Shown here: piece after piece, positions 39,608 through 51,024 of the stretch | Numbering within the stretch: position 1 is the first letter of the stretch | Layout: the number at the start of each line of letters is the position of its first letter | From: Amoebophrya sp. A120 | Taxonomy: Eukaryota; Protista; Dinoflagellata | Assembly (NCBI GenBank): GCA_905178155.1 | Contig: CAJINV010000003.1 | Span: forward strand, 1,607,557-1,671,556 | Length of the DNA: 64,000 bases | Direction: 5' to 3' | Position numbers and translations under genes: made by a program | Notes under the pieces: model-generated | Told to the model about the DNA's origin: nothing | Databases searched by the model: none | Seen by the model: only the letters and a program-made list of their open reading frames with translations

Positions 39608-42600
39608 TCAATTCAATGATGTTGATGATGTTCTCAATGCAACCATGATCATGTGCGGTGTAGTGACACAACTGAGGCCAATGAATATGATTTGCATGTG
39701 TATGCCGAGCGATACAATGGTTTTTGTCAGTGTGTGGCTCGGAATGAGGAAAAGAAGAAACGGAAAAATGCAACAGGGAGCTGTAAACCCTAATATTATT
39801 TTCCAGAAATTGAAATCGCTAGACGTTGCAGTCGTATCATTTTCTCTAACAGAGGTAGTCGTCGGCACCATCTTCCCTGCATGCTCACGCCCATTGTGGT
39901 AGTTCGTTTCGGTGTCTCCTATCGTTGCTGCGCTATCCGTCCTGGTTCCTCCAGGACAACTCGTGTATGGACGTCGTTGCGAACTCAGTGTTTGAATTTT
40001 TCCTTTCGAAGTGCTATGCTGGTTTCGGTTTGTCAAGACCTCAGCCTGCATTTTGGTTCCGTCCGCGGACGTCCCGATTTCAGGTCGTAGCCCCGTGGGT
40101 ATTGATTGTGCTGATGTACCAAATTGCGTCAGTTCGATCTCATCCGCGTCATTCTCATTTTTCCTGCTGCTGGCAACATCAAAAACTTCAGAATCATTCC
40201 TCATGCCGGCGGTGCGGCTGCGGTGTGCTGGTGGCGCTACAACATTTCCATCTTGGGCGAGGGCTTGGTCCTGCAGGTGGAATTCCGCCCAGATGGAGTA
40301 CAAATGCCGCAGCGAGTGGTAGAAGTTGAAGTAGATTCCGAATGCTATGAGTGGCGGCAGCTGGCGAAACAACAGGTAAACGAGGATGAGCTCCACAAAC
40401 TCGAACAACTGGAGGTTCAGGCGAAAACAAACCGTTGGCACGCTGAGGCATGTAGAAGATGCACGAGAAGTTTTTACTGGCCTTGGAGCAGAGGCAGAAG
40501 GTGTGCGAGCAGTAGATATTTTCGCCCTCGCGTCGCGAAAGAACGTAAGGCCGCCGATCACGACACGGCGAAGATTTATAGTGATCACCAGATCGCGGTC
40601 CTCGGAGGCTTGAGCGTATCCAGGTGGGTGCCCTCCGTGTTCACAATATGCCGACTTTTGTGGTGTCGTCTTTTCTCCTTGCATAACGAGAACGAGAAAG
40701 AGGAGAAAAGCCAGGAAATGTACCTGGTAGAGGCTTTGCAGGAACTGGAACAGCTGGAACAGCGCCTCCTCTTGGCCATCATCTGCAGTCACTTGTTCGC
40801 CCGCCACGAGTTCGATGGTGTTTTCAGCGCCGGCGTTGTGTATTCCTTCTTGGCTTGTTTGTGCCGTGATAGGCACGAACGCGCGGAGTGTGTCTAGGGG
40901 TGCTTGCGCTATCGCCACCAGAAACATGCCACCGCGGACGTAGAAGGCCAACATCGTGCGGAGGTGCGAGGTGAGTTTTTTCACCAGCGCGCGTTTTCCG
41001 GTCCGGAGTTGCGATGCACCGCGCATTGTCGACGACGGGTAGGTGGAGGTGCTTCCTCTGGCGTTCTTGTATTGATTGTCCTCTCCAAGCGGACGAGCTG
41101 ACTTGAGTTCCGTCCACCAGAGCGTATCGCCTTCGCCGAAGTGGTAGATGGAGGTAATCAGGAACAGCTTCAGAGCCAGCACGGGTGCCACCGACCACAA
41201 CACGAACGTAAGAAACATCAGCGTCAAATACCACACAAGCCAAATTTGAAACTCCTTGTCTCTCAGCAAGAATTGCACTATGCTGTCCGTCGTGCTCGAA
41301 CCACTTGACGCGCTGCTCGAGAAGGACGCAGGAGTGGATGCTCGCGATTTGCTTGGTGGATTCTTTTGCGTCTGCTCATAATTTTTCATTCCTCGCAGTC
41401 CCATTATCGTCAGAAATATTCTTTGCAGCGTCCATGGGTGGGCTTTGTTTTTGCTCAGTCGTGATGTAGTGTTGTCGGTATAAAAATTTGCGCCGCTGGT
41501 CGTGGTAGAGAAGTTGTTCTGCGATAATTCCGATTCCGATGCCAGGGTTTCGATGTCGTCCCTCTTCTTACTCACACCAGCCTGCGGAGTGGTTGCGAGG
41601 TAGTTCCACGTGCGTCGTTTGAGAAGCCACCAGAGAATGGGATCCGAAGCGCCGTGCGGGAGGCCGAACAGTGGAACCGACACGAGTAAGAAAAGCACCT
41701 GTGTCGAGAGCGACAAGGGCGTTTCGGACGACCCGAATTGAAATTCCAAAAACAGGGTGAACAAACACCCCGCCAGACCGATCGCGTTCGAAAACAGCGT
41801 CGCAAGTAGCGCGAGGTCGATATCACTGTAGTTATTTCTCTGTGGTGCAACTGTTTCTGTTCGAGCAGACGGCGAGGGGGGAGCCTCCTCTGAGAGCAGA
41901 GCACTTCGTTGACCTAGGTGCTCGTGCTCGTCTGGAGTAGATTTGATGACGTTCTCGTCCCGCAGATGGATGGCCCATAGATGGACGGCTCGGAGTGCGT
42001 CGACGAAGGTAAAACGGTGGTCCTCCGCTGCCTGCAGTTTGTACACACACACCACGGTCATTGCCAAGTGCAGGCCCGATACGCACATCGCTGAGGTGAC
42101 GAAGAAGAAGAAGGCCTCCTCGAGCGGCAGCGCGAAAGAGAAGGGTTGCAGGCTGATCGGCGCCACAAACACGGGGTTGATGCGCCACACCCCGTTTCGG
42201 ATCGCCCACACGTATAACAGTGCACAACTCCCCCTCGTCCCGCTCAGTTGCATAGCATGAACGGCAATACAAGTATCCACAAGAATGCCGGTTTTGCACG
42301 ACACATTTGCCGCGCTGGAGTGTAGTGCTATTTGGGCTACCAGAACTTGTCATGCAACTAGTGCCAAGAACGAAGCAACGGGTGGATTGGGTATTTTGCA
42401 TGACAAATGAGGGGGAGGGGGAGTTGTGCACTGTTATAACACGTCGGTGAGGGACAGAAAGATGGTGGAGAGGAGCGTTATTTTCAGAATCGACAGCCGG
42501 TTCTTGGCGACGCAGGCCGCACCGTACACCCATTGCAGCCAGAGGACGGGCATGGACCAGACTAGAATATCGCAAGAAAAAACTGTTTCACTGTGAACTT

Positions 42601-45600
42601 GTGATGCATAGCATGGAACACAGAACTATTTGTCTTGCTACACCTGCAAGACCTTGACTCTTTAGGGGTGTTTTCCCTTTGGAAGCGCGCAAGGCAAATT
42701 TTCTGTGTCATGTGTAATAAACTTGTCATGCAGATCTTGCAAAATCATCACAGTGAAACAGTTTTTTCGTGGGATATAGAATCAGGCCCAAATAAAGTCC
42801 TGAGCTGCCTTCCGTTTCGCGAAAGGCCGTAGAAGAGGACGTGCCGGCGTGGTCAGAGATGGTGCGGAATTGGAGCCCGCCTGCTAGGTGGATCAGACCC
42901 GTACCAATAAGGAAAAGCGCCCAGAGCAGCACGATTCCGCAGCGGCGCACCCGCGGTTTCAGGGTGGTCGTCGCTTCCGAAGTGATGCTGAACATGTTCA
43001 TCTTGGACGAGTCGTCGTGTCGCTCCTGACCCTGAGCCGTTCTTGGGGCATTATCGAAAGTTGGCGTGATATTGCGATGAAAATGAATTCTGTCCCGCAC
43101 CACCGGCGGCATTTGCATCTCATCCACATTTGGGAAATGCAGCGCCCAGAGCAATGCGCAGAGGATGGTCTCCAAAGAGAAGAATGCGTACTCCTCAATG
43201 GGCACGTAGCCAATCACGAACAGCACACGGGACCCTACTTCGTAGCCCCACACGCCGCGGTACACGAGGTAATTGTCCCAGGCGACCGTCCACGTAGTCG
43301 CAACGACGCACAACACCACAGTCCAGAACCGCCACGCGTCGAGGTACCATGACGTGTTGCCATCCATAGTCGGGAAGAAGTAGCTTGCTACGAGCGAGCA
43401 CTTCGATGTGGAGGTGCGCTGTTGCGTGTCGAATGGCGTAAACTTTTTCTTTACCACACGGACGTCGCTTTGGTGCGAAGTTCCGTCATCTTCGGATCCG
43501 GAAGAATCTTTTGGACCTTTTCTCCTTTCGGTATCATATGGAAAACCGAAAATTTCTCCTTCTCGTTCTCCCCCGCGGCCGGCGTGATTTCGATTTGTTC
43601 TACTTGTCGTGCCTGTCGTCGTGCCCGGGCCGCGAAGGGGTCGGCTGCCGCACAAAAACAGAGCTGAGAGCCCGAGTCGTTTGGAGCGCAACCCCACACG
43701 AATGTGCAGGAGTCGGCGGAGGATGTAGATACTGGGGAAAATCCAAATGCAGTGGTACTGGAAATACGTGAATTCGGTGACGAACTCCGGTAGATTTTTC
43801 ATCTTCTGCAGGTCCTCTACTTCTCCGTTCGTGTCAACGTCTTGGCCAAGGATCTCGAGCACCAACGTCGCAAGAGCCGACTTCCCGAGGCGCAGCAACT
43901 TTTCGAAGTGCGGCGAATGCGTCAAGAAGCTCAAGATCCCGAGCACCACCACGGGGACCAGCATGCGCATAGCCCACGAACACAGGACGCTGACGAAGAA
44001 GATGCGCAGCAGCTTTTATGAAATGCAAAAATGTCTGGGTCTGGAAACTTGTAAAAATGCTGGGTCGGGAAGAGTGAATGCTCTATAATGCACGGCCAAG
44101 CATGAGAAATATCCGCGCTGCTTAGTATTGCGCTTTCCGCATGACAAAGTGGGTTTGTGCATGACAAGTAAACGGATCTCATCTTGGACACGCATCACAA
44201 ACTTTTCAGTCATGCCAGACACGCATGACAGACTTCGCATTCTTCCAGACCCAGACATTTTTGCATTTGATACCTTTTTGATCGAGACCAGTCTCGTAGC
44301 CAGCTGGAGCTTCTTGCGGAAGCTCACGCGCGCGCGGTTCTGCTTGCCGGCGTTGTGCGCAAAGATGTGGTAGTTTTTCGCGAACCGAATTTCCTCGTGA
44401 ATCTTTTGGTAACAGATACTGGAGAACAAAATCAGGTCGCTGACTTCTTTGGGCAAGGCCGCGATTCCGGGTCGGGCCTCGGTGTAGTACTGGTCCGCGA
44501 TGGCCATCATGAACTCCATGAACCGCGTCCATTGTGAGTAGTGCTTGGCGACCGGCGGCTGGTCCACTTTGTGCCAGAATTGCTCCAGTGCCTCTCGGCT
44601 GCTCCGGTGCATCTCGAGCTGCCCACTTTCGACCTGCTTGCGCTTTTCGTTGGTCGCAGCCAGCCACGAAAGCGACATATTCTGCTCCTTTTTCTCCAGG
44701 TCAATGTCGAAGAAGTCAACGAGGTCGCTGGGCATGTAGACGCGGTGGTAGTCTAGGTCTTCATCGATGTCCCGAATCATGTTTGTCAGCTGAAACGCGT
44801 TTCCGAGCGCGCGCGCGGTTGGCAGCAGCTTTTTCCGCACGTCCAGCGCGCGTTCGCACAGGTCTGCGGCCTGCGGGTCGTGCTCGAAATACTTCAGTAT
44901 GATATTTCGGGTCGACTTGTGTAGCTGCGTTGTAGCCGTGTGCTGCGGTTGATGTCTCACTCCTAGAGCAGTCGCCGAGTTTAAGTTTTCATCTACAAGT
45001 CGCACTTCTAGTTGTACCTGCTCGTGGTGTTTGTTCGAACTGCTACTGCGGCTCTTGCCTAGTCTCTCGTTTACGCAAAAGGCGCGGGCATCGGCTTCGA
45101 ACGTTTCGACTTGAGCCACCAAGGTCTGGATTAGCTGCGAGGCGGGCGCTCTTGGTGTTGTCGCCAAGTGCGAGCTGTCTTCGTAGTTATGAGGCGTGTT
45201 GTTCTTGGAGGTGAGCTTCGTTCCCAACAACTCTTGAGAATGATCAGTACCAGCGGTTGTGGTGTAGCCAATGCGTGCTCGCGGGCCATCGGGTGTTGCT
45301 GTTGCAGCGGTGCAGGTCGGAGTAGAAGACGACGCCAAACTGGAGGAAACCGACGTTGAGGCCAAGCTCTCGGTGCAGCTTGCAATGCTGGTGCCAGAAG
45401 TGGTCTCAGTGGCTTTAGTAGCAGAGGGACTTCCACTTAGCTCGCTTTGGCTTCTGTTACGATCATTTTCCTCCTCCTCGCAGCACGCGATCTCGTTCTC
45501 CAGCACTTCTCGCGGCAAACACGCGGACAGACCGGGGCACAGAATTGGCAACATGAAGTCGCCGATCACGGCGGCAGAACCCTTCATGTATTCTACCAGG

Positions 45601-48600
45601 TCGTCAAAGTTGCGGCAGCGAACCGTTTCCGCGCCGTCGATGAGCATGGACTTGAAGAAGTCCCGAAAGAGGGTGGAGGGGTACTCGCGCCGCAGCGAGG
45701 CGTCCATCACGGCGGGCAGAATCGGGTGCCGCTGGTAAAACAAGTCCATCAGCAAATCGGCCTTGTCTTCATCCGCATCGTCGGGCCCGTCGCCGTCGTG
45801 GTCGTCTCCAGATGCTGAATACGCAATTCCAGGTCGTGGTCCTGCAGTTCTTCCTCCAGGAGCACCTCCGGATCTTCTTCCGTCGTTACTCCTCCCGTTG
45901 CGCACCGCTAGCTCCCAGCACTCCCAGAAATCTTTGATGAAGGCCTCCAGACGGGCTTTGCGTGGGGCCTCGTTGTCCACGGTGTCGACGTAGTCGTCAG
46001 CGATGCGAAAAAGACCGTACATGGCGGCGGTATCCAGGAATCGGCGGAAGTCCATCAGCGTGGCTGCCCCGAAGTAGGTTGTCCCGTGCTTCCACATGAG
46101 ATAAACCGCGAGGCAGTAGGACCTTGCAAGCTTGTCGCGCCGGATCTTTTGGATGGCGAACAACAGAAAAAGAACCAGCGGAATGGTGACGCACAGCAGG
46201 CTCAGGTTGACGTGCCGCAGTGCTTCCGCAAAATACCGCTGGCGGGTGGCGAAGGCGAGCGTGGAGTCTGGGGCTCGAAAAGGGCGTTCGTCCTGCGGGC
46301 TGGCTCTGCCGGGATCCGCTGCTGCTCCAGGCACGTCGTGGAGCAGCAGGTTCTCACGCGCAGCCAGAGATGGTGGACCTGCGTCAACAATATCCGCCGA
46401 CGTAGCGGTACTACTAGCGCCAGTCAACATGATCTCCTCGGATGTTCTTGTGCCCGGCATCAGTTTGGCCAGTGTCCACGCTACGCTTTGCAGAAGGCTT
46501 TCAGGGATTTCGTGGATGCAGAAGTAGTAGGAGTAGCGCACAATCGCCCACAGCGCAAGCAGGACGTGATTCGCGAAAAACAGGAGATACTCCGGACGGG
46601 ACAGCGTTTCCGGATCTTCTGCTGCAGATTGTCCTGATCTTGTTCCCCCCGTTGTGCCACTTTCTTGAAGCTTACGGTCCAGCAAGTTCGCTGCTACCAC
46701 TCCGCTAACGAGCGAAGGAGGCACACCGGGACCCGGACTCGTGAGGTGCCCAGCGAAGACGAGGTTGGAGACCTGTGTTACGCACAGAAATTTGAACATG
46801 AGGCACTAGGGCTGCGTGGGATAGTACACCAGGTTGAAATAACACCGTAGAGGTTTTATTTCTTGGCCTAAAAAGCATGATACCTGAATCCGACGAGGCG
46901 GCTTCTAAATGATACTTGATCAATCTATTGGTATTGGTATTGATGTCATACCTTGCTCTCCAGACTGGGCTTGAAGATGAGCGACTGCGTCAGCGTGTTT
47001 GCGAGGCCGAAAGCGTTTCCGCGGAAGGAGTTGAACCCCTGCTCAAATTCCCGTGTGCCCGCATGCCGCTCGTAGACAAGCGTTTTCTTCAGCTGCCCCG
47101 ACGGTAGCTGAAGTCTCTGCTCCATGCGGATGAGGACTTGGTGCAGAAGCTTCTTCCAAAACTGGGCCTGGCACGTACTAGGTTTGATGTTGGAAGATGA
47201 TGATATCTCGCGTTCATCTTTCCCGATCCCGACCGGGGGATCATAATCGATGTCCGCGTGCTGTTGGTCCTCGTCCTTGTTACACCTGGACAGGAGGTCG
47301 TTCATCGTGTACGGAGTCGGAATGAGAACAAACAACGCCTCTCCGCCCCGCACTGCGCCCTTCGGGTCCGTTTTGGTCGTCGCGCTCACGTAAAAAGTGA
47401 AATTCTGTACCGCGGCGTTCAGTGCCTCGTCCAAAACACTTGTTCGCTCGTAGTTGCCATTACGATGCTTTGCCGGCTCCAGGGCGAACACAGCCTCCAG
47501 ATGCGTGTCCAGGTCGGTCTCGAAAAAGAAGTTGTGGTGCAGGAGGTTGGGGATGGTCTGGTTGAAACCGAGGTAGAAGAGGAGAACCGACGGGGAAAAA
47601 ACCATCTGCTCGGACCAATACTTCTCCGCGTCATACCGCCGATATCCAGTGCAAAAATATCGCACTCGTAGTACTTGCAATTATGCATTACAAATCTCCA
47701 TCCTAAGGGAAAACAGCATGACAAATTCCATTCGAATCCGTTATGCTGAGGTAATTTGTGATGCAATTGCTACTAGTACGTGTACGATACTTTTGCAATT
47801 CATAGCCGAAAACGTTTCGGCAGCAACTTCTGCTCCACAAACCGATAGTCGGCGGCGGCGACGACGCCAGTGTAATCTCCGTGGCAGATACTAGTAGGGG
47901 GCATCTTGCTGGTCTCATGGACGTTCTGTTCTTCTGCGATGTGCTGGGTGGACAAGCTAGAGGTTGGCTTCTCATAACCATCTGTGGTCGACGAAACCTT
48001 ATCCAGTTGCAATGCGTTTTCAGTTTTCTTGTGAAAGCAGACGGCGTGCACCTTTTCCTCTCCACTGTCCGGGTGCAACATCAGGCGGGACAGTCGCTCT
48101 GCTTGTGCAGTCCTTGGAATATCCGGCCTCGCGGAGGGTTTGGCGTGAGTACCGGGCGGCTTGGTCATTCTTACACCAGAGGCTGGAGGTGTTTGAGATA
48201 GAGTTGTAGCTTGCGGCCTCGTCGTCCCTGCAGCACGTACACCGTCGTCAGACTTAATGTTAGAGCGAGCAGCTGCGTCTTTCGAATTGTTTCCGCCTCT
48301 ATTTCGCAGGTCGTGGTCCTCGGAAAATTCCAAAGCGTCCACCTCGGCACTGAGTTCAAACTTGACGCCGTTCCTGCGCGCGAGTTGCTCGAGGGCCTTG
48401 ACGGGGGCGCGGAACCCCTCCCCGTTCTCGGGGTACCAGGTGCCGAGCATGTGGCCGCCGTAGGTCATCAGGCTGTACAAGGACGGGGCCGCCTGGGGGC
48501 TGGCGCCGACAAAGATGACTGGCCACTTCAGAAACCGTCGGTTCCAGGGATCTTTCACGAACTTCGCGATATGGTTCTGGAACGAGTTGAACATGTCCAT

Positions 48601-49477
48601 CCGGAGCGCTGCGGATACCAGTTTGGGGTCGAGAAACTCGGTGAAGGAGACCATCGGTTTCCAAATCCATTCGTAAATGCCCGTCTGGTACTTCTCCTCC
48701 GCTTCCGCCATGAATAACCGCAACGAAATTCGCTCTGCGGTGGCAGCTCCTGGGGAGGCTGCATATTTTCGACCACGTGAAGACGCTGCGGGTGCGGCAG
48801 GAGCTGCATCTGAGGAAAATACAAAGGCAAGTTGTTTTGATGGCACAGCCGCATTTTTTTCAAGGTAATTAAGGATCGTCCCCTTTGCCTCTACAACACG
48901 GTTTCTTCTTTCTGAAGGCGAAGGGGAAGCATGTGCATGTACATGTATGAGCACCAAAGGTCTTTCTACGTTTAAAAATACCTCCGATCGATTCCAGCAG
49001 GTGCCTGCGCTCGCGATCTGCGAGGAAGTTCAGGAGATCCTCCGGTTCGCCGGGGATGTCGACAAAGCTTTCGCTTTGTGGGCCCGCGTCTTCACGGGTT
49101 GTAGAAGACGTTTGTTCCAGTCCCCCGGATGACGGATCGTGCCGTGGGGGAGGAGGAATCTGGACTCGGTACGCGGGGTCAAGTTTTTTCAGCGTGTAGA
49201 ATTCACTGACCTTGCCACCAAACCTCTCGAAAATCCGCTCGAAGACATCCGGAAACCAGTACCAGGACGGGCCGAAGTCGAACTGAAAGCCGTCGCCGAC
49301 TATGTGCTGTGCGCGACCCCCAACGGCTTCGAGCCGCTCGTAAACAGTGACATCGTACCCTAGACGGTTCAGTTCCAGACTGGCGGCCAAACCACTGAAA
49401 CCACCGCCGATCACGGCGACCTGTGGTCGAGCGAGGTAGTACTTTTTTACTTCTTTTTTCGTCGGCATGATCAGCAT
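39608..49477 (-). CDS. crtIBY-blh: Tetrafunctional fusion: phytoene desaturase (CrtI) - phytoene synthase (CrtB) - lycopene cyclase (CrtYc/d type, two repeats) - beta-carotene 15,15'-dioxygenase (Blh/Brp)
   Basis: CrtI: VAVIGGGFSG, FDFGPSWYW, GNAFGLANTLTQS, NLVFAGHLTSPGPGVPPSLVSG. CrtB: RIADDYVD, YMKGSAAVIG, AFQLTNMIRDIDED. Cyclase: WDNYLVYRGVW/PIEEYAFF and AIRNGVW/LPLEEAFFF. Blh: GLPHGASD, YHFGEGD, YHSLRH, VTTPHM. Introns of 70 (48912-48981), 167, 179 (46773-46951), 261 (44013-44273), 214 and 231 nt each give exactly the needed frame change. The result is 8,748 nt (2,915 aa) from ATG 49477, or 2,967 aa with the distal first exon. Confidence 0.9.
42213..42438. mobile_element. Introner in the second cyclase repeat
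   Basis: TIR tataacagtgcacaactccccctc / gagggggagttgtgcactgttata; direct repeat acacg. Removing 231 nt gives LSLTDVWAIRNGVW. Confidence 0.9.
42568..42776. mobile_element. Introner in the second cyclase repeat
   Basis: TIR tatc.ca.gaaaaaactgtttcactgtga; direct repeat tagaa. Removing 214 nt gives YLGLILVWSMPVLWLQW. Confidence 0.9.
44017..44272. mobile_element. Introner, TATCAAATG family (can also be read as GT-AG on the minus strand)
   Basis: TIR tat(g/c)aaatgcaaaaatgtctgggtctggaa; direct repeat (g/c)cttt. Removing 261 nt fuses CrtB to the cyclase (SIKKLLRIFF). Confidence 0.9.
47643..47804. mobile_element. Introner with diverged TIRs in the CrtI domain
   Basis: Imperfect inverted repeat of about 50 bp (tgcaaaa.tatcg...gcaatt...acaaat); direct repeat gccga. 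Removing 167 nt gives LPKRFRRYDAEKYWS. Confidence 0.85.
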
Positions 49478-49607
49478 CAGAGTGACGAAGTAAAATAATA
49501 CGGTTACTGGCGGCACGACGGGCCACAGACGACGCCCTGAGAACCCACGAAGATCCTGAAAAGATCACCCCCGACACCCCAGGGGGAGGGGTCGGAAAGA
49601 TTCGGAG

Positions 49608-51024
49608 CGTCCGCCCCTCTGTAGCTTCCAGGGACAGCCTGCCGACGAAAGGGAAGCATAGACCGCTCGTGTAACGCGCGTTACACGAAGGTATGGTAGA
49701 TGTGAGAAAGGGCCAGACGCCCCGCGGGCGTTGCCACAGGCGCTAGCTTGCTGGGAGTGACAAATAACCACGCCCAACAAAGGCGAGCGAGTGGTCGCGC
49801 GGTTGTAAAAGCCCTGGCGCGACGCGGAACAATCTGGGGCCCGGCAATGGACGGAACTGCCCCCGTCCGCAGGGTCCATCTCGCTTCCATGGGCCAGATA
49901 TACCCGAGCCCGAGGACAAGGCCAGGTCGGAAATGGTCCAGCAAAAGACGGCGCACTAGCCCCAAAGCGAGTTTTTTTTTTGATTCAAAAACGAAGCCGC
50001 TGAATTTGTTGAATCAAAGAAACAGCCCGTGTTTCAAGGGTAGAAAGGCCACTTCTTGAACCCCGAACAAAGGATCCGACCAAGGTTCAAACAATGTTCA
50101 AAGTCGCCAATCACGGCGGTATGGCGAAAGCTTCAGAGGCCAAAAAAAAGTTCCTAAAAAGTTCCGTTCAAGATCCGATAAAGTTCCGATCAAGATCCTG
50201 TCCAGAGGACACTTTTTTGGCCACTTTTTTGCGCCGCCAAATCCATAGATTCTAGGCGGGGGAGGGGCCAGGAAAAGCGGCGAAAAAAGTGTCCTCTGGA
50301 CAGGATCTTGATCGGAACTTTTGAAAATGGAGATGGCGGCCATGAACTCTGGAAAATGGCCCCGTGCCTGGCCGAATTCCACTGGAGAATGCTCCTGAGT
50401 ACAAAAATTGTGCCGCGGGGAGAAAACTCCCACCCTTGTTTGACATGCTTTCTGCAGGATTGGCCTGCCGATCCCCGCGACCCCAAGAAGCAAAACACTT
50501 GGCACCACATCGCGCCAAAGGCCATCGCCTCTCTGCGGGCTCCCGGATGCTGGGCAGGTAGAATGCCTGCGGTCGAAACACCTCCGCGCCACCCCCTTTC
50601 CAATGTCCAAGACTACCGCGAAAAAACTACAGAAGCACACCAGAAGGGGGGGCAAAAGGACACGCTGGCCGCGGCGGGCGGCGCGTTCCCTGGCGGCTGG
50701 CCCGCGCCAAGTTTTGCGTGGCCGTAAAATACCGACATACCCCCGCAACGGGAAAAAAAATCGCGCTTCCCAAACAGGGCGGCCCTCGGGATAGGCTCGG
50801 CAGCTATGCGACACGCCCAGAAAAGGCCGCGCAAATTTGCTATACAAAGGAGGCAAAGCGAAGGCCAAAACATTGGGCCTGATTCGTAATTTCGGGGCGC
50901 CGAAGTAGCCCAGCGGCCAGGATCTTGATAGGATCTTTTTCGGATCTCAGACGAGCTGAAGTGGCCCGGCGTTCCGTGAGTAATACGGGTTCCTTGAAGC
51001 CTTACAACTGGACAACTTCTGCGA
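49608..51024. repeat. 1,417-bp direct repeat, copy 1
   Basis: Near-identical to 51921-53337 (offset 2,313). I noticed only two substitutions, and the ORF-track entries are duplicated. Confidence 0.95.

Follow-up and report, generated by a model that had tools for sequence, protein, structure and literature searches.

A seven-exon, introner-split gene of the parasite Amoebophrya sp. A120 predicted to carry the four enzymes of a retinal pathway on one polypeptide

Among described systems, the nearest to the gene treated here is the quadrifunctional CrtI-CrtB-CrtYc/d-Blh protein of Thecamonas trahens (XP_013761525.1), reported by Rius et al. (2023, PMC10016063) in a study that discusses the spread of a fusion by horizontal transfer and does not mention Amoebophrya, Syndiniales, diplonemids or Chromosphaera. 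The same study treats the trifunctional CrtIBY protein of the thraustochytrids Aurantiochytrium, Schizochytrium and Hondaea, which a knockout identified as the sole carotenoid pathway in A. limacinum, together with the single-domain genes of Oxyrrhis and the bifunctional genes of Noctiluca, which fall in the same gene clades as those of T. trahens and the thraustochytrids. In bacteria, crtEIBY-blh and crtIBY-blh operons are linked to proteorhodopsin, and their Blh cleaves beta-carotene to all-trans retinal (Sabehi et al. 2005, PMC1175822). Our subject is a nuclear gene of Amoebophrya sp. A120, read on the minus strand from 49477 to 39608 of a 64,000-nt stretch of contig CAJINV010000003.1, hereafter the window, in which positions are counted. 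A preliminary description of this DNA had held out, with a hedge, the novelty of a four-enzyme fusion, and on this point the T. trahens protein had already been published (Rius et al. 2023, PMC10016063). The trifunctional thraustochytrid proteins that it mentioned are documented in the same paper, and the I-B-Y-blh order that it likened to bacterial operons is indeed that of crt(E)IBY-blh (Sabehi et al. 2005, PMC1175822).

When the seven exons are joined across six introns (Table 1), they give one open frame of 8,646 nt, that is 2,881 codons and a stop, running from the first in-frame ATG at 49477 to the stop codon at 39608-39610; frame arithmetic over the 8,646 nt found no internal stop in the running phase. 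The introns were placed from read joints, sequence and homology taken together. Along this frame the domains follow each other in the order CrtI, CrtB, two lycopene-cyclase repeats and Blh. The preliminary description had reached a protein of about 2,900 aa from five open reading frames (ORFs) and a small exon by removing six introns: the frame, the coordinates and the size stand, and the count is corrected to six long open frames plus the 124-nt exon, that is seven exons. It had also seen CrtI run into CrtB and the cyclase into Blh within single ORFs; these two transitions lie inside exon 4 and exon 7, respectively. About half of the protein length is lineage-specific low-complexity insertion, situated between and inside the catalytic cores, such as the insert of about 110 aa in exon 2 and the Ser/Thr-rich insert of about 230 aa that splits CrtB within exon 4.

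Expression of the gene yields one message, with a length of at least 9 kb. The read layout covered 40901-46900, which holds all three inter-domain links, and run X1 gave one contig of 9,034 nt (depth 54.4, 0 mismatches) lying on 40901-42207, 42439-42562, 42777-44012 and 44274-46774. This contig skips exactly 42208-42438 (231 nt), 42563-42776 (214 nt) and 44013-44273 (261 nt), that is introns 6, 5 and 4, and its loose end behind 46774 reads 46954-46983, the end of exon 3, so that intron 3 is removed too. Since it is unbroken over 44274-46774, the message retains the CrtB insert of about 230 aa; indeed, the inserts within 40901-46774 stay in the contig. Beyond 40901 it extends for another 1,323 nt and ends about 30 nt past the stop. 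Its length equals a leader of 358 nt, the 8,646 coding nt and a trailer of 30 nt, assuming that introns 1 and 2 are removed as modelled, a match that fits their removal, short of proof. As to early ends near 44016 or 42726 and retention of introners, which the preliminary description had named as outcomes that would give separate proteins, the recovered X1 contig skips introns 4-6.

The contigs of run X5 pass from exon into intron and show none of the X1 joints, as genomic DNA would. Runs X1, X2 and X3, which come from one sample, each contain 0.85-0.86 of the sampled words, close to the proportion of exon in the 6,000 nt covered, (6000-832)/6000 = 0.86. Furthermore, a Pfam profile search found no other match to BCD or SQS_PSY in the 115.5-Mb assembly; no intron-less DNA copy therefore lies behind the X1 contig, which is best read as mRNA.

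Introns 2, 4, 5 and 6 are of the TAT...ATA type and carry inverted repeats of 24-35 nt at their termini; the splice point of each falls in a direct repeat of 5-6 bp. Each excision takes one copy of this direct repeat (5-6 bp) and restores conserved codons. Introns 1 and 3 have no introner repeats and are each single copy in the genome, so that the fusion can be called hidden by introners at introns 2, 4, 5 and 6, whereas introns 1 and 3 are ordinary GT-AG introns. A GT-AG reading was tested by sliding the cut through each direct repeat (Table 1); for the CrtB-to-cyclase intron, the proposed 261-nt GT-AG element at 44273-44013 was confirmed. Introners 5 and 6 interrupt cyclase repeat 2, and their excision restores YLGLIL/VWSMPVLWLQW and LTDV/WAIRNGVWRI (the slash marks the joint), as in the homologues. 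If retained, intron 4 leads to a stop at 44016 and intron 5 to a stop at 42726. The gene is thus a clean example of non-canonical introners that sit within conserved catalytic repeats and are exactly removed.

These introners belong to large families. For the family of intron 2, a first look at the genome gave 2,781 candidates; 40 of them were scored, with 80-86% identity over the full length. Introns 4-6 stand at extreme depth in the DNA-like run X5, and the very high depth over intron 4 marks it as a repeat family. In the raw RNA-seq run X8, 86 reads fall on 44241-44272 within intron 4 and all carry G>A at 44263 and have flanks unlike those found here; they are transcribed copies of this introner family at other loci, and do not come from this gene. 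We also noticed that an in-frame reading of intron 4, MSGSGRMRSLSCVSGMTEKFVMRVQDE, resembles frames beside the last exon of two opsin loci, SGPGRMQILSCTCLAWLDLEKKLVMRVQEE (L004, minus strand, about nt 2250-2400 of the reverse complement) and MSGSGRMHVCHACLA (L007, about nt 2700). The resemblance suggests that opsin genes, too, are interrupted by the family of intron 4.

The exons find their best relatives among Amoebophrya proteins, and strains A25 and AT5.2 are only 31-77% identical to A120 in the aligned segments. The A25 protein CAD7950531.1 (1,312 aa) is colinear across exons 4/5/6/7, with junctions at 175/176, 558/559 and 600/602; exon 5 is 42% identical to its residues 176-558, and exon 6 aligns to its residues 559-600 and to residues 1551-1591 of AT5.2. 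The AT5.2 protein g9540 (1,836 aa) is colinear through exons 3-7, with joints at 279/280, 1078/1079, 1550/1551 and 1591/1593. It begins with MMKLLPARFRRYEE, the exon 2/3 joint, and thereby matches the junction LLPKRFR/RYDAEKYW obtained here by removing intron 2. Exons 1 and 2 are found in AT5.2 g9536 (501 aa), exon 1 being colinear with its residues 66-211, and the two are separated there by 34 residues against 33 here; with the frame, this linker is the basis for the removal of intron 1, which like intron 2 lies outside the read layout. By these alignments every junction of the gene model has outside support. Sequence identity between the strains reaches its highest values in the conserved catalytic blocks and falls at the long inserts.

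The public models of the gene in these two strains are truncated or split: that of A25 (P0001) starts inside CrtB, and AT5.2 divides the gene into g9540 (P0171) and g9536 (P0212), g9540 being devoid of the stretches of Blh His1 and His3/4. Protein searches with exon 4 and exon 2 gave no self-hit, an outcome that, given their length window, has no bearing on the annotation of A120.

One transcription unit could also yield separate working enzymes, either because the linkers are cut by a protease or because minor transcripts that keep introners give CrtI-CrtB and separate products. Such an arrangement would accommodate the length of the low-complexity linkers and their poor conservation between strains, the division of the pathway in relatives (into single-domain genes in Oxyrrhis and bifunctional ones in Noctiluca; Rius et al. 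2023, PMC10016063) and the loss of rare isoforms from contigs. However, only one transcript form was recovered, fully spliced over introns 3-6 and of uniform depth, and the frame is open across all junctions in three strains this divergent, which would be unexpected if the downstream parts were not translated from the same message. No internal start or 2A-like signal was seen, although no search was aimed at either. We hold separate enzymes to be improbable, and read the gene as encoding one polypeptide.

The beginning of this polypeptide may lie further upstream. The frame above 49477 is open up to 49564 and codes for a hydrophobic stretch, LWPVVPPVTVLFYFVTLMLIM (open frame 49555-49478); several aligned homologues likewise start with a hydrophobic segment. 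An ATG at 49659 would join in phase if an 80-nt intron were removed, and would add 34 residues. This putative, unannotated first exon may give the protein a hydrophobic N-terminal anchor. A tblastn comparison of the AT5.2 N-terminus with the region upstream of the gene gave nothing significant. The putative 80-nt intron contains a GC-rich hairpin-like stretch, CCGACCCCTCCCCCTGGGGTGTCGG. Neighbouring ORFs of the window do not exceed the curated cut-off of any Pfam family, so no upstream GGPPS (geranylgeranyl diphosphate synthase) domain is fused to the gene. From its sequence, the product is predicted to be a membrane-embedded protein of 2,881 aa, possibly with about 34 more at the N-terminus.

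Profile searches were run exon by exon, and the scores are therefore those of single exons and not of the joined protein. For CrtI (TIGR02734 / PF01593) the profile is covered in order, at positions 1-93, 116-252, 288-452 and 456-494, on exons 1-4; as each exon was searched alone, none reaches the whole-protein cut-off. The same exons 1-4 also match as NAD_binding_8/Amino_oxidase, and exon 2 is colinear in BLAST with five full-length fusion proteins. The flavin adenine dinucleotide (FAD)-binding motif GGGFSGL...E...GGR stands at 49408-49313 (exon 1), the motif GASPQAAPSLYSLMTYGGHMLGTWYP, in the GASP...MTYGGH..GTWYP block, at 48507-48430 (exon 2), and FRGNAFG at 47026-47006 (exon 3). The C-terminal block, sought as N-x-V-F-A-G-x-x-T-x-P-G-P-G-x-P-P, is present as NLVFAGHLTSPGPGVPP at 46766-46716 (exon 4), a signature common to all fusion homologues compared.

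The CrtB and first cyclase-repeat profiles score above their cut-offs (Table 1). In CrtB both Asp-rich motifs are present, RIADDYVD at 46007-45984, with its DDYVD, and FQLTNMIRDIDED at 44795-44757, with DIDED, as are YMKGSAAVIG and RVYMP. Cyclase repeat 1 carries WDNYLV at 43280-43263 and PIEEYAFF at 43202-43179 (exon 5), and repeat 2 carries PVLWLQW at 42550-42530 (exon 6) and PLEEAFFF at 42127-42104 (exon 7); the PxEE motif thus occurs in both repeats, as in all homologues compared. For Blh, PF15461 (BCD) scores 89.6 bits against a cut-off of 28, and exon 7 holds GLPHGASD at 41665-41642, HFGEGD at 41143-41126, YFNFYHSLRH at 40333-40304 and TTPHM at 39664-39650. The histidines of PHGASD, HFGEGD and YHSLRH (two His), along with the conserved C-terminal TPHM, align with those of the homologues. 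These four conserved histidines are presumably the iron ligands. Every CrtI, CrtB, cyclase and Blh motif listed is common to T. trahens and the other fusion proteins, and the earlier statement that the catalytic motifs are intact (GxGxxG, both Asp-rich CrtB motifs, both PxEE and four Blh histidines) agrees with what we found.

These motifs also bear on whether the gene might be a decaying, functionless acquisition by horizontal transfer, its open frame kept by chance. Half of the protein is low-complexity insertion and four transposon-like elements lie in the coding region, as one might expect of such a relic. But a stop-free 8.6-kb frame after the exact excision of six introns is no chance outcome, the gene is expressed and spliced, its motifs are conserved in three divergent strains, and no second gene for Blh or phytoene synthase was found in an assembly that has at least six opsin loci. 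A functionless gene is already very unlikely, with next to no probability left to it, and the gene probably codes for working enzymes.

Table 1. Positions of the features discussed (in the window for the gene; in genome contigs for opsin and RPE65-family loci)
Feature	Position	Strand	Description
Exon 1	48982..49477	minus	CrtI start (phytoene desaturase); NAD_binding_8 52.7 bits; crtI_fam positions 1-93
Exon 2	47805..48809	minus	CrtI middle; NF058655 positions 117-252, 123.7 bits
Exon 3	46952..47637	minus	CrtI C-terminal half; crtI_fam positions 288-452
Exon 4	44274..46772	minus	CrtI C-end, hydrophobic linker, CrtB; SQS_PSY (PF00494) 102.7 bits, cut-off 26
Exon 5	42777..44012	minus	membrane linker, cyclase repeat 1, start of repeat 2; TIGR03462 44.4 bits (repeat 1), cut-off 39.4
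Exon 6	42439..42562	minus	central part of cyclase repeat 2 (124 nt); matched by a piece of its own within the same X1 contig
Exon 7	39608..42207	minus	end of cyclase repeat 2, Blh, several long inserts, stop
Intron 1	48810..48981	minus	172 nt, plain GT-AG, without terminal inverted repeat, single copy in genome
Intron 2	47638..47804	minus	167-nt introner, TAT...ATA, direct repeat TCGGC, imperfect inverted repeat of about 35 nt, no GT-AG reading
Intron 3	46773..46951	minus	179 nt, plain GT-AG, single copy in genome
Intron 4	44013..44273	minus	261-nt introner, 30-nt inverted repeat (29/30), direct repeat AAAAG, readable as GT-AG
Intron 5	42563..42776	minus	214-nt introner, 30-nt inverted repeat (28/30), direct repeat ATTCTA, ends TA..TA, no GT-AG reading
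Intron 6	42208..42438	minus	231-nt introner, perfect 24-nt inverted repeat, direct repeat (A)CGTGT, ends TA..GT, no GT-AG reading
Putative 5' extension	49478..49659	minus	ATG exon 49659-49636, 80-nt GT-AG intron 49635-49556, open frame 49555-49478; sequence reading only
Opsin L001	C13:2466166-2467316		
Opsin L002	C8:4244364-4250101		
Opsin L003/L006	C8:4176145-4176804		
Opsin L004/L008	C3:6393336-6394138		
Opsin L005	C4:6131540-6136390		
Opsin L007	C3:1400852-1401154		about 205 kb from the window
RPE65-family locus	C15:39574-43339		carotenoid cleavage oxygenase
RPE65-family locus	C1:9261929-9263263		carotenoid cleavage oxygenase
RPE65-family locus	C2:10096515-10097572		carotenoid cleavage oxygenase

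We consider it quite probable that one message and one membrane protein channel geranylgeranyl diphosphate (GGPP) by way of phytoene, lycopene and beta-carotene to retinal for opsins. Two GT-AG introns and four transposon-like introners, three of these with non-canonical ends, would be removed precisely from the transcript. Going by the established activities of the four families, and provided that the polypeptide stays intact, CrtB would condense two GGPP to phytoene, CrtI would desaturate phytoene to lycopene, the two cyclase repeats would turn lycopene into beta-carotene, and Blh would cleave the latter to two all-trans retinal. The retinal would then load the proteorhodopsin-type opsins, six or more, for which other loci of the genome code.

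The preliminary description had called for a genome search for opsins and for a source of GGPP. Opsins are there: Bac_rhodopsin (Pfam) matches at least six loci in the assembly, each split by introns, and helix G reads YNxADLxNK, with the retinal-binding lysine, in all six. Helix C is of the proteorhodopsin type, DTE (YRYxDWxxTVPLQxxEF), in the five of five loci that were translated. A blue-tuned proteorhodopsin in Amoebophrya was noted by Coesel et al. (2021). A source of GGPP, on the other hand, gave no match: no trans-polyprenyl-diphosphate synthase (for farnesyl diphosphate, GGPP or solanesyl diphosphate) was detected in the assembly with PF00348, with TIGR02749 or with P0181, a query that has a PF00348 domain. 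PF00348 and TIGR02749 each match all 14 control genomes. The same kind of six-frame search found the opsin and RPE65 exons, and fast-evolving, intron-dense genes can escape it; we therefore speak of a GGPP synthase that is not detected, rather than absent. In the supplement of Farhat et al. (2021, PMC7789003), only COX10, a farnesyl-using enzyme listed as present, stands under 'farnesyl'.

The missing synthase match could be turned into another explanation, in which only Blh matters and cleaves beta-carotene or other carotenoids of the host, a photosynthetic dinoflagellate, while CrtI, CrtB and the cyclase would be relics or serve some other purpose. Farhat et al. (2021, PMC7789003) report that Amoebophrya has lost the plastid and plastid isoprenoid synthesis with its genes, a loss that would suit this explanation and that also fits the apparently non-photosynthetic host assumed by the preliminary description. 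The genome furthermore has the three RPE65-family carotenoid oxygenase loci of Table 1, a second possible route to apocarotenoids beside Blh. We nevertheless find it quite improbable that Blh acts alone. Intact motifs are found in CrtI (FAD), in CrtB (both Asp-rich motifs) and in the cyclase (PxEE in both repeats), and strain identity peaks in the catalytic blocks and drops at the long inserts, which argues for selection on all four activities. Moreover, as a six-frame search can miss fast-evolving, intron-split genes, the absence of a GGPP synthase is not established.

Several points weigh against a single message and a single enzyme leading from GGPP to retinal. The RNA status of run X1 is a guess from its labelling, and a contig cannot prove that a single molecule spans the gene; it would also hide minor isoforms that keep introners. 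Neither the true 5' end nor the removal of introns 1 and 2 falls within the reads; these two introns rest on frame, homology and the other strains. The raw RNA-seq run X8 has no reads on the gene, its 86 reads being all on the introner copy, and the raw RNA-seq run X9 gave no reads, which is no test of silence. As to the enzymes, TIGR03462 gives 22 bits for cyclase repeat 2 on exon 7 alone, under the cut-off of 39.4, because two introners spread this repeat over exons 5, 6 and 7. TIGR03753 gives Blh 91.2 bits, slightly below its cut-off of 95.25, in four matched stretches broken by inserts, and catalysis could suffer from the long inserts that CrtB and Blh contain. Finally, no polyprenyl-diphosphate synthase that would supply the substrate was detected in the genome.

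We still prefer the reading of one protein that makes retinal from GGPP, by which the proteorhodopsins of Amoebophrya would gain a home-made source of chromophore. A wider proposal joins several claims: that the four-enzyme fusion is ancestral in dinoflagellates and was split in Oxyrrhis and Noctiluca, and that the Amoebophrya version, in a plastid-less organism where no isoprenoid pathway and no polyprenyl-diphosphate synthase could be detected, is fed by prenyl precursors of the host and charges a proteorhodopsin system of at least six genes that powers the free-swimming, non-feeding dinospore. Taken together these claims are rather unlikely to hold; if true, they would amount to a self-made light-energy module in an obligate parasite.

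The place of the gene among its relatives can be drawn from alignments and trees. We took P0158 (1,458 aa) for the T. trahens protein, on account of its species label, its four domains and its Blh C-terminus. The four-domain architecture is also found in Chromosphaera perkinsii (P0168, Ichthyosporea), in the transcriptome of the diplonemid Namystynia karyoxenos (P0004/P0142) and in P0003, P0010, P0014 and P0169, from uncultured organisms or metagenomes. Full-length tetrafusions, among them those of T. trahens and Chromosphaera, can be aligned with all seven exons in the order of the gene. The CrtB tree joins A120 and AT5.2 at 100/99 and places them within a clade of tri- and tetra-functional fusions supported at 100/100, and the group of six that holds the only named bacterial sequence (Nocardioides) lies apart from this clade. 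In a quick tree of Blh, A120 and A25 fall inside a clade with 99% SH-aLRT (approximate likelihood-ratio test) support that contains every tetrafusion Blh in the tree. Oxyrrhis and Noctiluca sequences were left out of both trees.

Judged from these comparisons, the gene is an orthologue of the T. trahens quadrifunctional gene, a member of the published fusion family and no new fusion event. As its CrtB and Blh lie inside fusion clades of unrelated eukaryotes, it was probably inherited or acquired already fused; the supported nesting speaks against the collapse of an operon into a fusion in this lineage, which the preliminary description had proposed. The range of the published fusion widens from one apusomonad to syndinean parasites (three strains), Chromosphaera perkinsii, Namystynia karyoxenos and uncultured organisms, and this wider spread bears on the question, raised by Rius et al. 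(2023, PMC10016063), of whether the pathway spread among eukaryotes as a ready-made fusion.

Relatives are also abundant in marine metagenomes, as a P0002 cluster (618-621 aa, cyclase and Blh; 30 members) and a P0172 cluster (about 680 aa, CrtB; 32 members). One sequence from each cluster, P0149 and P0187, has its longest contig at 81,742 nt, and the two may lie side by side, as parts of one gene or operon of an uncultured organism. Loci related to P0002 were sought among the genome contigs and nothing was found, so that the literature is our source for the operon context in bacteria.

Set against the bacterial operons, the A120 gene has the same enzymes in the same order beside a rhodopsin system (the type of lycopene cyclase was left out of this comparison), but in the operons the genes are separate and crtE, the GGPP synthase gene, is included or nearby. 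The introns that are introners differ in no respect that we noted from the introner elements described in Amoebophrya by Farhat et al. (2021, PMC7789003): introns 2, 4, 5 and 6 have the same kind of inverted repeats, direct repeats and many copies, three of the four likewise have non-canonical ends, introns 4-6 are seen to be removed precisely, and all four are ordinary members of their kind that happen to sit in this gene. Oxyrrhis and Noctiluca belong, like A120, to the wider dinoflagellate lineage, but their genes are separate or bifunctional. The thraustochytrid CrtIBY protein has the same CrtI-CrtB-cyclase order, the same CrtB clade, an N-terminal hydrophobic anchor and hydrophobic linkers; unlike the A120 protein it has no working Blh domain, and its end product is beta-carotene and not retinal.

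The closest likeness is to the T. trahens protein. It has the same four domains in the same order on one polypeptide, all seven A120 exons align colinearly to it (BLAST, P0158), the motif blocks are shared, the CrtB and Blh sequences fall in the same clades, and its bearer is likewise a heterotroph with opsins; for both proteins, the conversion of GGPP to retinal is predicted from sequence. The hosts differ, A120 being a plastid-less parasitic alveolate and T. trahens an apusomonad. The A120 protein is about twice as long as its relatives, with 2,881 aa against 1,458 aa in T. trahens, through the lineage-specific inserts inside and between the A120 domains. Moreover, the A120 gene is split by six introns, three of them non-canonical. 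The A120 gene is thus an unusually long, introner-split member of a known family.

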